From: Ylistrum balloti
Lineage: Eukaryota
Direction: 5' to 3'
Assembly: GCF_031769215.1 (NCBI RefSeq)
Contig: NW_026781935.1
Span: 1-64,000 of the forward strand
DNA length: 64,000 nt
The notes below the pieces were generated by a model. It made no database searches, was not told where the DNA came from, and saw only the letters and a program-made list of their open reading frames with translations. Of the stretch, positions 1,280 through 15,499 are shown one piece after another. Each line of letters opens with the position of its first letter. Position 1 is the stretch's first letter. A program made the position numbers and the translations under genes.

Positions 1280-3841
1280 TCACTTGATAACAAAATTGAT
1301 TAAACGGTTGGGAATCACAATTCGTTTAACAATAGTTTTATTAGTAAGCCAAGTTCGAACATTTTTTTCTTGCATGGCAAGTTTAACAAGCTCTTCTTGA
1401 TCAAGATCGGCTGTGGTTTTGATTTTACCCCTTACCTTGCCATTGATCTGAATAGGAACGACCACTACAGACAATTTTAAAGAGTTCTTCTTGTAATGAG
1501 GCCAATTACTATCTTTCAAACTTTTTTTCTCAGATTCGCCTTTTTTAGAAAGGACTTTATTGTAAATTTCTTCACAGATAAATGGAGCGAAGGGGGAGAG
1601 AATAGTTACAAATTTTCTCAAAATTTCTAAAGCATCATGAAGGTGGTGTGGATTAATTTTCTTAGCTGAAGCCTGATTTATAAAAATCATCAAACTGGAA
1701 ATGGCAGTATTGAAGTGAAATTTCTCAATGTCGTCTTCTACTTTGGCAATTGTACGATCAAGAAGAGTGTTTAACTCTTCAATGATTTGATGGGATTCTT
1801 TTTTTTGAATTGAGGAAGTTGATCCCTCAACTGAGTTTTTAAGTAAAAAGATCATCTGTGACCAGCGAACCAGTTTTAAAATAAAACGTTGGCATCCCTC
1901 AATCCCGCTTTCATTCCATTCCAAGGTCTTTTCTGCTGGAGCCGCAAAAAGAATAAACAAGCGTACACTATCTGCTCCGTATTTATCAATCATCTTAAGA
2001 GGATCAACCCCATTATTTTTGGATTTGCTCATCTTTTCCATTTTGATAACCAAGGGGACTCCTGTTTCAGGGCAAGTCTTTGGGTTTTTCCCCAATTCAT
2101 GCTGGAAAAAATACTTATTTGCTTTGGGTGAAAAGTACGAAGGTGACACTACCATGCCTTGGGTGAGTAATCTTTGAAACGGCTCTTTGGATTGAAGGAG
2201 ACCGATGTCACGAAGAGCTTTATGGAAAAACCTTGCATAAAGAAGATGCATACAAGCATGTTCGATCCCACCAATGTATTGGTCGACTGGCATCATTTTG
2301 TTTGCAATGTCCGATTTAAAGGGTTGTTCTTCGTTATGAGGGTCAAGGTAACGAAGAAAATACCAAGAAGAGCAGGTGAAGGTATCCATTGTGTCGGTTT
2401 CTCGATGATAGGCTTTACCATCTCTTTTTACTTGTGTAAAGTCTTGATTTTTTTCAAGTGGATTGATTCCACTAGTGAATTTTATATCAAGAGGCAAAAT
2501 AACTGGTAAATTAGAAAAATCTTCAGGAATGAATTCCCCATTTTCATTTTTAAGCATGGGAATTGGATTACCCCAATAACGTTGTCTTGAAATAAGCCAG
2601 TCTTTTAACTTGTATTGAACCTTGCGTTCACCTAATTTTTTTTTTTCTAGATCATCAATAATTTTGCCAATGGCTTCTTTATTAGGAAGATCATTGAAAG
2701 GGTGTGAATTACACAGCATTCCTTCACCAGTGTAAGCTTTATTATCAGAAACCTCTAAATTGGAGGGTTTTTTAATCACTGTAATAATGGAGAGTCCATA
2801 TTTCTTGGCGAAAGCAAAGTCTCTTTCATCATGTGCAGGCACACCCATAATGGTACCAGTCCCATATTCGGCTAGAACAAAGTTCGTAACATAGAGTGGT
2901 ATTTTTTCTTGGGTGTAAGGATGGATAATCATACTGCCAGTAAAAATTCCTTCTTGAACATAATCAGAGTTTTGATCAATTTTTTTGCAATCTTCAGCAA
3001 ATTTTTTGATTTTTTTATGATGATCTTCATTGCCAATTAAATAATTCAGTAAGTCGGGGTGATCAAAAGCAATCCCCATGAAAGATACACCAAAAAGTGT
3101 GTCTGGGCGAGTCGTGTAAATGGGAAAATTCTTTCCTTGGCAAGTGAAATTGATTAAGGCACCTTCACTTCTACCAATCCAATTTCTTTGCATGTTTTTA
3201 ACTCTTTCTGGCCAGCCGCCCATCTGGTCAAGCTCATCAAGGAGCTCTTGAGCATAATCGGTTATTTTGAGATACCATTGTTCAATTTCTCTTCGTTCAA
3301 CCACGGCTCCAGATCGCCAAGCTACTCCCTCATGGACCTGTTCTTTAGCAAGAACCGTTTTGTCAACAGGGTCCCAAAAGACAGCACTCTTTTTCCGATA
3401 GAAAAGTCCTTTCTCATAGAATTTGAGGAAAATCCATTGTCCCCATCGATAGTAATCAGATTGTGCGGTGCAAACTTCCTTACTCCAATCATATGAAAAT
3501 CCTAACTGTTGAAGTTGTTCCCTCATTCTGTCAATGTTAGAAAAGACCCACTTGGCAGGATGTATTTTTTTTTCAATCGAAGCGTTTTCAGCAGGGAGAC
3601 CAAAAGCATCCCATCCGATTGGATGGAGCACATTAAAGCCTTTCAACTGCTTATAGCGTGCTAGAACATCACCAATCGAATAGTTTCGTACATGACCCAT
3701 GTGAAGATCACCACTTGGGTATGGGTACATTTCAAGACAGTAAAATTTAGGTTTATTTTCTTCGTGATGGAAGCGAAAGGTATTATTGTCTCGATAAAAT
3801 TCTCTCCAAAATCTCTCTATTTTTTTAAAATTGTATTCCAT
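1280..3841 (-). CDS. leuS: Leucine--tRNA ligase
   Basis: 853 aa; MYPYPSGDLHMGH (HIGH), editing-domain YTTRPDT and GTGTIMGVPAHD, KMSKS, C-terminal QINGKVRG. Confidence 0.98.
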   Translation of the reverse strand: MEYNFKKIERFWREFYRDNNTFRFHHEENKPKFYCLEMYPYPSGDLHMGHVRNYSIGDVLARYKQLKGFNVLHPIGWDAFGLPAENASIEKKIHPAKWVFSNIDRMREQLQQLGFSYDWSKEVCTAQSDYYRWGQWIFLKFYEKGLFYRKKSAVFWDPVDKTVLAKEQVHEGVAWRSGAVVERREIEQWYLKITDYAQELLDELDQMGGWPERVKNMQRNWIGRSEGALINFTCQGKNFPIYTTRPDTLFGVSFMGIAFDHPDLLNYLIGNEDHHKKIKKFAEDCKKIDQNSDYVQEGIFTGSMIIHPYTQEKIPLYVTNFVLAEYGTGTIMGVPAHDERDFAFAKKYGLSIITVIKKPSNLEVSDNKAYTGEGMLCNSHPFNDLPNKEAIGKIIDDLEKKKLGERKVQYKLKDWLISRQRYWGNPIPMLKNENGEFIPEDFSNLPVILPLDIKFTSGINPLEKNQDFTQVKRDGKAYHRETDTMDTFTCSSWYFLRYLDPHNEEQPFKSDIANKMMPVDQYIGGIEHACMHLLYARFFHKALRDIGLLQSKEPFQRLLTQGMVVSPSYFSPKANKYFFQHELGKNPKTCPETGVPLVIKMEKMSKSKNNGVDPLKMIDKYGADSVRLFILFAAPAEKTLEWNESGIEGCQRFILKLVRWSQMIFLLKNSVEGSTSSIQKKESHQIIEELNTLLDRTIAKVEDDIEKFHFNTAISSLMIFINQASAKKINPHHLHDALEILRKFVTILSPFAPFICEEIYNKVLSKKGESEKKSLKDSNWPHYKKNSLKLSVVVVPIQINGKVRGKIKTTADLDQEELVKLAMQEKNVRTWLTNKTIVKRIVIPNRLINFVIK

Positions 3842-12090: not shown

Positions 12091-12140
12091 ACAAGACAAA
12101 CTTGTTTGAACTTTAAGAAGAAATAAAAAGCAGAAAACCA

Positions 12141-12180
12141 CCCCCCCCCTTGCACTTCTGCAGAGGAGGGGGCTTATTTC
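12141..12180 (+). terminator. Intrinsic terminator
   Basis: GC-rich hairpin C9-TTGCA-cttc-TGCAGAGGAGGGGG followed by T-rich sequence. Confidence 0.75.
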
Positions 12181-12399
12181 TATTCTAATCCAATATTATT
12201 ATTCCCACCCAAAATCAAATTTTTCCTATAGTCCATTTAATCACAATTCGCTTTTTTGATTCTCGTTTGTGTATTATTCATTTAAGTGAGAAATAAAAAA
12301 CTATCATCAGGTAAGAAAAAAATCCTCCAAAAACTTTTACATTTAGTATTGAAATCATTGTAAAATTAATCAATTCTATCGCTTGGAGAGAGAAATATT

Positions 12400-14181
12400 G
12401 TGACAACAACTACAACAGAATATTCCATAAAAGATTTATTAGAAGCAGGTGCCCATTTTGGTCATCAAAGTGTCTATTCCAATCCAAAAATGTCGAGATT
12501 TGTCTTTATGAAAAGAAAGGGCATCCATATCATCGACCTTCAAAAAACGGTTCTTTATCTTGAAAAGGCTTGCAATCAAATTAAAAATATCGCAGCCCGC
12601 GGTGGCAAAGTTTTATTTGTAGGAACGAAGAAACAAGTCAAGGAGATTATCAAACTCAAAATTACCGGAACTAAACAGTACTACATGAATACCCGTTGGG
12701 TAGGGGGATTACTAACCAATTTTAAAGTAGTTGGTAAGTCCATTGATAAGCTAAAACATTATAATGAAATTTTAGAAAAGCCAGAACTCCAAGAGGAATA
12801 TACCAAAAATCAAATGATTAAAATCAAAAAGGAAAGGGATAAGCTTAATGAAGTTTATGAGGGAGTGATTACAATGGAGAAACTTCCAGATGCAGTTTTC
12901 ATCGTGGATATTTACCATGAAAAAAAAGCTGCTTTGGAAGCAAAGAATCTCGGCATTCCAGTTTTCTCAATCGTTGACACAAATGGTGATCCCGACCTGG
13001 TTGATCTGATTATTCCTGGGAATGATGATGCAATTCGTTCAGTGGGTATATTCATCGATTATGTTGTTAGTGCCATTAATCAAGGCGGTCAGATTTTTAA
13101 AAGGAATCGTGAAGAGGATGAACTTTTCCTTGATCAGATTAAAAATGAGGAGAAAGAAAATACTCAATTAGAAACCACTCAAGAAAAAGAAGAAGGAGAA
13201 GGACAAAAGGATAAGGTCAGCAAAAATACTGAAATAAATGATGTAAAAACAGATGAGAAGAATGTTGGAAATAAGGAAAAGAAAGAGAAAGAAGAGGTTC
13301 AGCCAACAAACAGCAATCAAAATTCTGACAATACAAATAGTTCAAGCATCAAAGCAATTGATGTCAAAAAACTTCGTGACTTGACCAATGTCAGTATGAT
13401 GGAATGCAAGAAAGCCCTTGTGCAAACCCAAGGAGATATGGAAGAGGCGGTTAAAATTCTAAAAGAAAGGGGAATGGCAGTTGCTGAGAAAAGATCTGGT
13501 AATCAAGTTAAGGAAGGTGCTGTTTTCGTCAAAGCTGAAAGAAATCAAGCTTGGATGTTTAACGCTTGTTGTGAAACTGATTTTGTTTCAAAAAGTGATC
13601 ACTTCTTAGAAATGCATAAAAAGGCTGGAGAAGAATTTGTTGCTAAGGGTAGCGATTATCTTGATAGTGATGAATTGAAAACCTTACTCAATGAGACAAC
13701 TGCCAAAACGGGAGAAAAATTAGTTGTGAGTGATGGGGTTCTTTTAAAAACGGATGGGCAATTCTTTTCTTATCTCCACTCCAATCAAAAAATTGGAGTT
13801 TTAGTTGCTTTGGATGTTGTAGAGTCGGACAAAAAAGAAATTTTAAGCGATGAGAAGATTGAAAATTTAGGCAAGGATCTTTGTTTGCAAATTGCAGCGA
13901 TGAACCCTATTGCTATTTCAATGAACAAGGTTGATCCGTCTGTGATAGAAGAGCAGAAACAGGTTTTTCTTAAGCAGATGGAGGATGACAAAAAACCTGA
14001 TAATATCAAAGAAAAGGTAATTGAAGGTAAGATCAAGAAATATTTTAGTGAAAAGTGCTTGTTGGAAATGGACTTCGTTAAAGAGGACAATAAAACAGTG
14101 GATCAACTCATTAAAGAAGTAGGTGAGCAAGTTGGTGCAAAAATTGAGGTCATTGACTTTAAAAGAAATCAAATTGGTTAA
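12400..14181 (+). CDS. rpsB-tsf: Fusion of 30S ribosomal protein S2 and elongation factor Ts
   Basis: aa 1-~230 are S2 (LLEAGAHFGH, IHIIDL, FVGTK, RWVGGLLTN, DTNGDPD, IPGNDDAIRS); ~85-aa charged linker; aa ~317-593 are EF-Ts (VKKLRDLTNVSMMECKKAL, ETDFV, IAAMNP, EKCLLEM); GTG start; no stop in between. Confidence 0.93.
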   Translation: MTTTTTEYSIKDLLEAGAHFGHQSVYSNPKMSRFVFMKRKGIHIIDLQKTVLYLEKACNQIKNIAARGGKVLFVGTKKQVKEIIKLKITGTKQYYMNTRWVGGLLTNFKVVGKSIDKLKHYNEILEKPELQEEYTKNQMIKIKKERDKLNEVYEGVITMEKLPDAVFIVDIYHEKKAALEAKNLGIPVFSIVDTNGDPDLVDLIIPGNDDAIRSVGIFIDYVVSAINQGGQIFKRNREEDELFLDQIKNEEKENTQLETTQEKEEGEGQKDKVSKNTEINDVKTDEKNVGNKEKKEKEEVQPTNSNQNSDNTNSSSIKAIDVKKLRDLTNVSMMECKKALVQTQGDMEEAVKILKERGMAVAEKRSGNQVKEGAVFVKAERNQAWMFNACCETDFVSKSDHFLEMHKKAGEEFVAKGSDYLDSDELKTLLNETTAKTGEKLVVSDGVLLKTDGQFFSYLHSNQKIGVLVALDVVESDKKEILSDEKIENLGKDLCLQIAAMNPIAISMNKVDPSVIEEQKQVFLKQMEDDKKPDNIKEKVIEGKIKKYFSEKCLLEMDFVKEDNKTVDQLIKEVGEQVGAKIEVIDFKRNQIG

Positions 14182-14199
14182 TAACCAGTATTTAATTTG

Positions 14200-14751
14200 A
14201 TGGAAAAGTTTTTTCTTGAGATTGAAGAAAAGATGGAGAAAGTACTGCAAAACCTTCAAAAGGAATTCGCATCCATAAGGTCTTTAAGAGCTCACCCAAG
14301 CTTATTAGAGAATTTAAAAGTTGAGATTTATTCTCAAAGTATGCTTTTAAAAAATGTCGCTTCTATCTCGGTGCAAGACACAAATACTTTATTGGTTACT
14401 GTTTGGGATCAAAGTGCGGTTCAAGGTGTTGACAAAGGTATTCGAAACAGCAACATGGGATTTAACCCCAGAATTGAAGGCAATAAGCTTTATATTCATA
14501 TCCCCCCTATCACGACTGAGCGTCGACATGAGTTCATTAAGATTGCCAAGGAGAAAGCAGAAAATGCTCGTATTTCCATCCGAAGTATTCGACGCCAATT
14601 TAATGATGAAATAAAAGAAAAAAATAAATCAGGAGAAATCAGCGAGGATATTCAAGAAACATCTCTTAAAAAAATTCAACAAACCACTGATTCTTTCTCT
14701 GAAAAAATCGATCATAGCTTAAAAGAAAAAGAAAAAGATTTAGTGAGTTAA
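14200..14751 (+). CDS. frr: Ribosome recycling factor
   Basis: FASIRSLRAHPSLLE, IPPITTERRHE, ARISIRSIRR, IQQTTD; position after tsf. Confidence 0.95.
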   Translation: MEKFFLEIEEKMEKVLQNLQKEFASIRSLRAHPSLLENLKVEIYSQSMLLKNVASISVQDTNTLLVTVWDQSAVQGVDKGIRNSNMGFNPRIEGNKLYIHIPPITTERRHEFIKIAKEKAENARISIRSIRRQFNDEIKEKNKSGEISEDIQETSLKKIQQTTDSFSEKIDHSLKEKEKDLVS

Positions 14752-14764
14752 TAATTTTTTCTTA

Positions 14765-15499
14765 ATGAAAAAATTACGACACATTGCTTTCATCATGGAC
14801 GGAAACAATAGGTGGTCGAAGTCTAAAAACCTCCATTTTTCTGAAGGCCACAAGCAGGGTCTTATAACACTTGAAAACATCTTGGAACATTGCATTAAAA
14901 GGGAGATAGAGGTCATCTCTCTTTACGCTTTCTCAAGTGAAAACTGGAAACGCTCCGAAGAAGAAAGAAGTTTTCTATTCGATCTTCTTTTTGAATATTT
15001 TAATGTGGACGATTTTCCAGAAAATCCTAAAGGTAGAAATAAAATTAATGTCTTGATAGAAAAGGATGCCCGGATTAAGATTATTGGGGATATTTCCCGT
15101 TTCCCAGATCATATTGTGAAAGTTTTAAAGAAATCCGAAGCAACTTCAATTAAACACCGAAAACATCTTATCCAAATTGCTCTTAGCTATGGGGGAAGGG
15201 AGGAAATCCTTCGTGCTGTTAAAAAAATCGCTCACTTCGTTCAAGACGGGAAAGTTCAAATTAGCGATATTGATGAAAATTATTTCAGTCAGTGTCTTGA
15301 CACCGCAGGGATTCCTGATCCAGACCTTTTGATTAGAACAAGTGGAGAATATCGAATTAGCAATTTCCTCCCTTTTCAAAGTGTCTATACAGAATTTTTT
15401 TTTACGAATACATTATGGCCAGACTTTGGACCGAAGGAATTGGATGAGGCAATTGATGAATATTATCGAAGGGAGAGAAGGTATGGGGGAAGGCTTTGA
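14765..15499 (+). CDS. uppS: Undecaprenyl diphosphate synthase
   Basis: HIAFIMDGNNRW, YAFSSENWKRS, ALSYGGR, DPDLLIRTSGEYRISNFL, LWPDF. Confidence 0.97.
   Translation: MKKLRHIAFIMDGNNRWSKSKNLHFSEGHKQGLITLENILEHCIKREIEVISLYAFSSENWKRSEEERSFLFDLLFEYFNVDDFPENPKGRNKINVLIEKDARIKIIGDISRFPDHIVKVLKKSEATSIKHRKHLIQIALSYGGREEILRAVKKIAHFVQDGKVQISDIDENYFSQCLDTAGIPDPDLLIRTSGEYRISNFLPFQSVYTEFFFTNTLWPDFGPKELDEAIDEYYRRERRYGGRL

Follow-up and report, generated by a model that had tools for sequence, protein, structure and literature searches.

A single reading frame joining ribosomal protein uS2 to elongation factor Ts in an uncultured spirochete-like lineage

Elongation factor Ts (EF-Ts) is usually seen as a freely diffusing recycling factor. 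Can it instead be made only within a ribosomal protein, and what would then become of the joint chain? The question is raised by a 64,000-nucleotide (nt) stretch of DNA, here called the window, from contig NW_026781935.1 of the Ylistrum balloti assembly. In the window, an open reading frame (ORF) at 12400-14181 joins ribosomal protein S2 (uS2, encoded by rpsB) to EF-Ts (encoded by tsf). It is very probable that this fusion is real, that it is inherited, and that it obliges the two proteins to be translated together. We further propose that the product stays uncleaved and tethers EF-Ts to the ribosome. The whole statement, inheritance and tethering together, has in our estimate a probability of about 0.5. 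Beyond what an initial annotation of the locus had noted, the fusion is widespread and recurrent, was born of the loss of the rpsB stop codon, and became obligatory after the tsf start was lost.

The fused reading frame and its domains

The features of the locus are given below, with amino acid (aa) positions and the evidence for each; pLDDT is the predicted local distance difference test score.

12385-12392, + strand: Shine-Dalgarno (SD)-like GGAGAGAG, 7 nt 5' of the GTG start (read from the sequence)
12400-14181, + strand: uS2-linker-EF-Ts fusion, a single ORF of 593 codons, stop codon included in the coordinates (ORF listing, profile matches)
12421-13086, + strand: uS2 core domain, aa 8-229 (PF00318, TIGR01011, PDB uS2 chains, pLDDT >95)
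13087-13194, + strand: predicted C-terminal helical extension of uS2, aa 230-265, which prolongs the last S2 helix (AlphaFold2; 5li0_b alignment)
13192-13341, + strand: predicted disordered polyampholyte tether, aa 265-314 (pLDDT <50)
13342-14178, + strand: full-length EF-Ts, aa 315-593, with the N-terminal three-helix domain, core and C-terminal module (TIGR00116, 1efu_B alignment, pLDDT >90)
13576-13587, + strand: TDFV motif, T393 D394 F395 V396 (aligned to E. coli TDFV, Asp80/Phe81)

The fusion ORF starts with GTG and contains no internal stop codon. The GGAGAGAG element before this GTG is among the few clear SD-like sites of the window. The initial annotation had described one 593-codon frame holding an intact S2 and an intact EF-Ts, and its coordinates and description prove accurate against Pfam and NCBIfam. 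Pfam Ribosomal_S2 (PF00318) matches aa 13-229 over profile positions 1-216 of 216, with 263 bits (cutoff 26.1; E = 1.8e-78). NCBIfam rpsB_bact (TIGR01011) matches aa 9-230 with 265 bits against a cutoff of 76.3, and uS2 chains of the PDB match the S2 part with E of about 1e-62. For the second half, the NCBIfam tsf model TIGR00116 covers aa 315-593 (215.8 bits, cutoff 104), and Pfam EF_TS (PF00889) covers aa 386-593 (156.8 bits, cutoff 27). The Pfam matches in the protein are Ribosomal_S2, one EF_TS and a sub-threshold EF-Ts_N. The EF-Ts part aligns with residues 3-253 of E. coli EF-Ts (1efu_B). By these family criteria, the S2 part is a bona fide uS2 and the EF-Ts part is a bona fide EF-Ts.

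Conservation points in the same direction. In the alignment, CETDFV at aa 391-396 matches CQTDFV of 1efu_B. Across 84 fused proteins, E392, D394, F395 and V396 are invariant, T393 is nearly so, and about 25 invariant columns lie within the S2 part. In E. coli, the TDFV motif (Asp80/Phe81) reportedly pries open the nucleotide site of EF-Tu and displaces Mg2+ and GDP, a finding attributed to Kawashima in 1996. The full-length family scores, the invariant TDFV and two confidently modeled domains suggest that both halves are competent. The conserved residues also suggest that the fused uS2 can be incorporated into the 30S subunit. A second rpsB or tsf was not found within the 64-kb window.

The AlphaFold2 model, built with the 84 fused sequences, has a mean pLDDT of 89.9; both domains exceed 90 and the uS2 core exceeds 95. 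A helix at aa 212-265 (pLDDT 82-97) is predicted to be the S2 C-terminal helix running on past the S2 core, and the Staphylococcus uS2 chain 5li0_b can be aligned as far as aa 256. The following segment, aa 265-314, is modeled as disordered (pLDDT <50). The N-terminal helices of EF-Ts are predicted at aa 319-364, the first of them at aa 319-329. The predicted template modeling score of the fusion is 0.51. Given this value and the disordered segment, the two domains are predicted to have no fixed mutual arrangement.

Between the two domains lies a linker (aa 230-315) rich in Glu, Lys, Asn, Gln and Thr, 44% charged and with a net charge of -8. The initial annotation had estimated it at about 85 residues. 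This length stands, at 86 low-complexity residues, and the nature of the segment needs revision: an S2-type helix extends to about aa 265, and true disorder is confined to aa 265-314. In relatives, this disordered segment is similar in composition and length, and its sequence is not conserved. The chance of 86 open codons at the base composition of the window is low (P of about 0.0013); the other two frames have 3 and 13 stops across the same stretch. The annotation had found no start codon ahead of EF-Ts, and there is indeed no in-frame ATG, GTG or TTG across aa 230-327 (98 codons). After the linker, the in-frame candidates begin with TTG at aa 328, followed by ATG at aa 333/334; they lie 12-18 residues into EF-Ts. 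The latter falls in the conserved GMM(E/D)CKKAL segment of EF-Ts.

An argument from the missing SD site before EF-Ts carries little weight. An SD-like motif precedes only about 5 of the 34 first start codons of window ORFs of at least 250 aa, and the background for the pattern is 0.13. Because few window genes have such a site, its absence before EF-Ts is uninformative. The source bacterium seems to initiate mostly without SD pairing, and the fusion might be a way of keeping tsf expressed where reinitiation is weak. The 309-nt upstream region (12091-12399) matches no known rpsB leader and no Rfam family. S2 autoregulation, if present here, would use an undescribed element.

Fused and unfused relatives

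The initial annotation had taken the fusion to be genuine. A search of the nearest relatives for the S2 plus EF-Ts architecture bears this out, since the closest relatives are all fused rather than split. The whole-protein search was length-restricted and blind to proteins of normal S2 or EF-Ts length. It returned more than 110 protein clusters with both PF00318 and PF00889, at 30-61% identity; in about 105 of these, mapping with hidden Markov models found both S2 and EF-Ts to be full length. All of the nearest relatives (P0001-P0009, at 43-61% identity) are fused. These stem from nine or more independent assemblies (Logan, JGI and ENA/NCBI), including long-read contigs of 2.11, 1.81 and 1.69 Mb. 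Because this search could not see proteins of normal length, two unbiased single-domain searches were run. The EF-Ts-only HMMER search was exhaustive (1.84 billion representatives, no length filter). Its top four matches are representatives of fused clusters (60, 49, 47 and 43% identity), and the first standalone EF-Ts appears at 41-44%. In the S2-only search, standalone S2 proteins from many phyla reach only 50-55% identity; the S2 part of the fused relative L081 is 72% identical to that of the window.

The neighborhood is shared as well. The next gene of the cluster is:

14200-14751, + strand: frr (ribosome recycling factor), in the order fusion-frr-uppS-cdsA (ORF listing; synteny with the RRF Pfam match in relatives)

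L081 and L082 show this gene order too, with frr, uppS and cdsA after the same fused ORF. A separate observation on this cluster concerns pyrH (AA_kinase), a gene commonly found between tsf and frr: the window (14182-14765), L081-L083 and L085-L087 lack it at that place, and L084 and L088 have it there.

The closest relatives of the window LeuS are probably on the same contigs as the fused P0001, P0007 and P0009, so that the fused genes would belong to the closest relatives genome-wide. The window LeuS itself (1280-3841, minus strand) is present at 100% identity in a collection of 5.8 billion proteins (P0397, on a contig of 64,740 bp). For the S2-EF-Ts protein, the whole-protein and S2-only searches of that collection gave no 100% match, the best being 61%. 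The fused gene may have been left uncalled on the window contig there.

The named relatives are metagenome-assembled genomes (MAGs) labelled Spirochaetota, and the placement of the window rests on the labels of these MAGs together with trees. Among the relatives is the spirochete endosymbiont of Olavius algarvensis (L083, GCA_905176685.1), with a fusion of 702 aa and an acidic linker of 200 aa; this fusion was found on 18 contigs from separate assemblies. We conclude that the window bacterium is a Spirochaetota-affiliated, spirochete-like organism, and that an entire uncultured lineage has inherited the fusion. The animal whose assembly holds the contig was probably associated or contaminated with this bacterium.

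How the two genes became one is suggested by the unfused relatives. The nearest standalone EF-Ts proteins (P0245, P0246, P0388 of the P0247 cluster, and P0248) are each encoded directly 3' of a standalone rpsB. In the four nearest unfused relatives, rpsB ends in a low-complexity C-terminal tail of 25-70 aa, and the gaps between rpsB and tsf are 3, 15, 36 and 9 nt. The two genes share a frame in all four, which would happen by chance about once in 81 cases. In three of the four, a single stop codon is the sole barrier between them, and the junction in L085 reads ...GGG TAA ATA ATG.... Since these relatives have a tailed rpsB, a short in-frame gap and often just one stop codon in the way, the simplest history is that the S2 tail lengthened as far as the tsf start, that the fusion arose through loss of the rpsB stop codon and that this tail now forms the linker. 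A tree of concatenated S2 and EF-Ts sequences unites L085 and L086 with the window group in one clade, with a Shimodaira-Hasegawa-like approximate likelihood ratio test (SH-aLRT) support of 100. This joint clade in turn nests in a larger group of unfused Treponema MAGs and many fused proteins, the few named ones among the latter being labelled Spirochaetales, Spirochaetes or Olavius spirochete endosymbiont. As an observation on expression, strong SD sites precede tsf in the unfused relatives L085-L088, inside the tiny rpsB-tsf spacer, in contrast to the scarcity of such sites in the window.

The ancestral start of tsf can be followed through the fused proteins as a Met eight residues before the V of VKxLR. 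It is kept in the following numbers.

Window clade: 0 of 16
Spirochete clade A: 16 of 19
Spirochete clade B: 6 of 13
Spirochete clade C: 4 of 13
Sporadic fusions in other phyla: 20 of 37
Separate clade grouping with Gammaproteobacteria in the tree: 0 of 17

In L084, an ATG still stands at the ancestral position, with an AGGAG 11 nt before it. No start codon is present at this position in the window or in L082; L081 has a GTG there, and no SD site precedes it. The minimum linker is 47 and 49 aa in the two clades that lack the Met, versus 21 aa in the sporadic fusions. Short of initiation at a near-cognate codon, the window clade can produce EF-Ts only within the fusion. The relatives offer an unusually clear stepwise record of an irreversible fusion of essential genes, from split and in frame, to fused with an internal start, to fused without one.

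Fusions also occur well beyond this lineage. A single origin of all of them was rejected, as the starred branches of a 163-row tree require no fewer than 17 switches between fusion and separation. In the ESM Atlas, 263 proteins make up a cluster whose name cites both domains, Actinomycetota being the commonest phylum. Many scattered fusions have short linkers rich in Arg, Ala and Pro and keep the Met. These look like translated spacers, that is, recent events or errors. An alignment-based scan of rpsB-tsf loci in GTDB genomes, which served as background and as a source of outgroups, found 80 of the 80 examined loci split. A single-protein scan of GTDB genomes gave no match, and a metagenome scan found only one unrelated, unfused, AT-rich rpsB-tsf pair.

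Known systems with similar parts

The canonical bacterial rpsB-tsf operon shares with the window fusion its proteins, their order and the downstream frr, uppS and cdsA. It differs in what separates the two genes. In the window, neither a stop codon nor a spacer lies between the two, and tsf lacks a start codon of its own, unlike the 80 examined GTDB loci and the four nearest unfused relatives, in all of which the rpsB stop codon is present. A full-text literature search, whose coverage leaves many subscription papers outside, found no paper on a bacterial S2-EF-Ts fusion. As far as could be told, it is uncharacterised so far, in agreement with the initial annotation.

The closest precedent is the plastid EF-Ts polyprotein PETs, which that annotation had invoked and which is real. 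The passages on PETs in PMC1939882 and PMC8343077, which draw on Beligni et al. 2004, describe a product composed of PSRP-7 and EF-Ts, which Chlamydomonas processes and Arabidopsis leaves mostly uncut. PETs is also considered there as a covalent attachment of EF-Ts to the chloroplast ribosome. As in the window, EF-Ts is the C-terminal part of a small-subunit ribosomal protein. However, the partner in PETs is the S1-domain protein PSRP-7 and in the window it is uS2; Pfam finds no S1 domain in the window fusion. In addition, PETs is the product of a nuclear gene, has a transit peptide and contains two EF-Ts units in tandem, whereas the window fusion has a single EF-Ts unit. The window fusion is an analogue of PETs with an independent origin, and not a member of that family. 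Among the best EF-Ts relatives, we also observed proteins of 470-1130 aa with four EF-Ts matches (P0250, P0254, P0256, P0270, P0274, P0290 and others). They are probably plastid polyproteins of the PETs type, with EF-Ts units in tandem.

Other likenesses concern the attachment points. Natural uS2 proteins with C-terminal extensions, such as the tails of the unfused relatives and the "sunset domain" variant, indicate that the uS2 C-terminus tolerates tails and extra domains. These known extensions end in a stop or in a Rho_N-type domain, whereas the window extension is a translation factor. The fusion scores 227 bits against the NCBIfam model of the sunset variant (NF051451), below its cutoff of 710, and has no PF07498 match. 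Many of the best standalone S2 matches (P0134-P0150 and others) do carry a C-terminal Rho_N (PF07498), which is another recurrent addition to uS2. Among laboratory constructs, the engineered S2-S1 chimera (PDB 4toi) shows that a C-terminal fusion on S2 can fold, and the single-chain EF-Ts-EF-Tu of Q-beta replicase structures (3agp, 4r71, 3mmp) shows the same for covalent fusions of EF-Ts. In 3agp and 4r71, whose chain names put EF-Ts first, the link is at the C-terminus of EF-Ts; in the window fusion, the EF-Ts N-terminus is the one occupied.

Fate of the 67-kDa chain

The genetic steps are borne out by the comparison of relatives. The ancestor had a uS2 with a long disordered tail and a stop codon a few nt before an in-frame tsf start. 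Loss of this stop joined the two genes and turned the S2 tail into a linker. The ancestral Met of tsf was then lost in the window clade, leaving EF-Ts only as the C-terminal domain of uS2. The later steps are the ones that we infer. The resulting chain of 67 kDa is most likely left intact. Its uS2 part would take its place on the solvent side of the 30S subunit, with the C-terminus expected to be exposed, and EF-Ts would hang from a helix of about 35 residues and an acidic flexible tether of about 50 residues. Each ribosome would carry exactly one EF-Ts, which could recharge EF-Tu set free close by, replacing its GDP with GTP. EF-Tu would be recycled beside the ribosome instead of through free diffusion, possibly also for the neighboring ribosome of a polysome. 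We put forward tentatively, at slightly worse than even odds, that EF-Ts is here a permanent part of the 30S subunit, covalently bound at one copy per ribosome and serving as a built-in exchange factor. If so, this would be a bacterial ribosome with its own nucleotide-exchange factor. E. coli makes EF-Ts at roughly one copy per ribosome, and therefore a 1:1 fusion is compatible with normal stoichiometry.

Several observations lend some weak support to an intact chain. The junction has no conserved motif, the linker keeps its minimum of 47-49 aa in the clades without the Met, and, by analogy, the PETs of Arabidopsis is largely unprocessed. Exposure of the uS2 C-terminus is suggested by the tailed and domain-extended natural S2 proteins and by 4toi. 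With the internal start gone, the fusion would be locked in as by a ratchet, because a stop codon in the linker would remove an essential factor. Its persistence can be explained by such a neutral ratchet and need not imply an advantage.

Other points weigh against tethering. A disordered linker is open to cleavage by housekeeping proteases, and the PETs of Chlamydomonas is processed. The S2 tail predates the fusion and its length may serve S2 itself, which weakens the arguments from minimum length and from the missing motif. One or two point mutations are all that separates fused from split genes, and the clade contains both, so tethering may have little functional effect. SD sites are rare in this genome, making SD-independent or near-cognate internal initiation conceivable, and L081 carries a GTG at the ancestral start position. 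Finally, the genome was read over 64 kb only, which leaves room for a second tsf elsewhere.

In the main rival explanation, the fusion is a polyprotein. One chain would be cut in the linker to give a tailed uS2 and a free EF-Ts, so that synthesis alone is coupled. We hold this to be rather unlikely. Post-translational processing of the Chlamydomonas PETs (PSRP-7 plus EF-Ts) offers a model for it, but the PETs of Arabidopsis works while mostly uncut. Similarly, a disordered segment of 50 residues would be an easy protease substrate, but no clade has a conserved cleavage motif at or before the EF-Ts N-terminus, and we know of no dedicated polyprotein protease for housekeeping proteins in bacteria. 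It also speaks for cleavage that free EF-Ts is universal elsewhere, as in the 80 split loci among the 80 examined in GTDB. A different route to free EF-Ts would be dual expression, in which an internal start, either a near-cognate ATC/ATT at aa 318/321 or the ATG at aa 333/334, yields extra EF-Ts and makes the tethered copy dispensable. The ancestral Met kept in other spirochete clades, with AGGAG 11 nt upstream in L084, the GTG of L081 and the prevalence of initiation without SD sites make this conceivable. It is nevertheless improbable for the window, where no ATG, GTG or TTG occurs over 98 codons, where a start at aa 333 would remove the first N-terminal helix of EF-Ts (aa 319-329), and where a simple consensus scan found no internal promoter-like site in the linker. 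All 16 members of the window clade also lack the ancestral Met.

The two remaining explanations question the importance or the existence of the fusion itself. A separate tsf or rpsB elsewhere could do the essential job, the fused copy being a tolerated extra or a decaying gene; the limited 64 kb that were read leave space for it, and we consider it a little less probable than dual expression. Both halves are full-length equivalogs, and their functional residues are invariant in the 84 fused proteins. Moreover, the four nearest standalone EF-Ts proteins are primary copies beside their own rpsB in other organisms and not spares, and no second copy lies within the window. Least probable is an artefact, that is, a sequencing or assembly error that erased a stop codon or shifted the frame between genes that are really split. 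The contig belongs to an animal genome assembly, which might raise this suspicion. However, errors break ORFs and do not create an open linker of 86 codons (P of about 0.0013), relatives are fused with similar linkers in at least nine independent assemblies, and the fusion of the Olavius symbiont recurs on 18 contigs. On the evidence of the independent assemblies, we rejected the artefact.

With EF-Ts made only within a ribosomal protein, the lineage provides a natural experiment on whether EF-Tu nucleotide exchange works, or even gains, when anchored to the ribosome, and on how strictly EF-Ts must match ribosome numbers. The fusion also bears on annotation. Public names, where given, describe a fused protein either as "30S ribosomal protein S2" (or a synonym of S2) or as "elongation factor Ts", not as both. 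Because such annotations name one half, automated inventories could wrongly report rpsB or tsf as missing.

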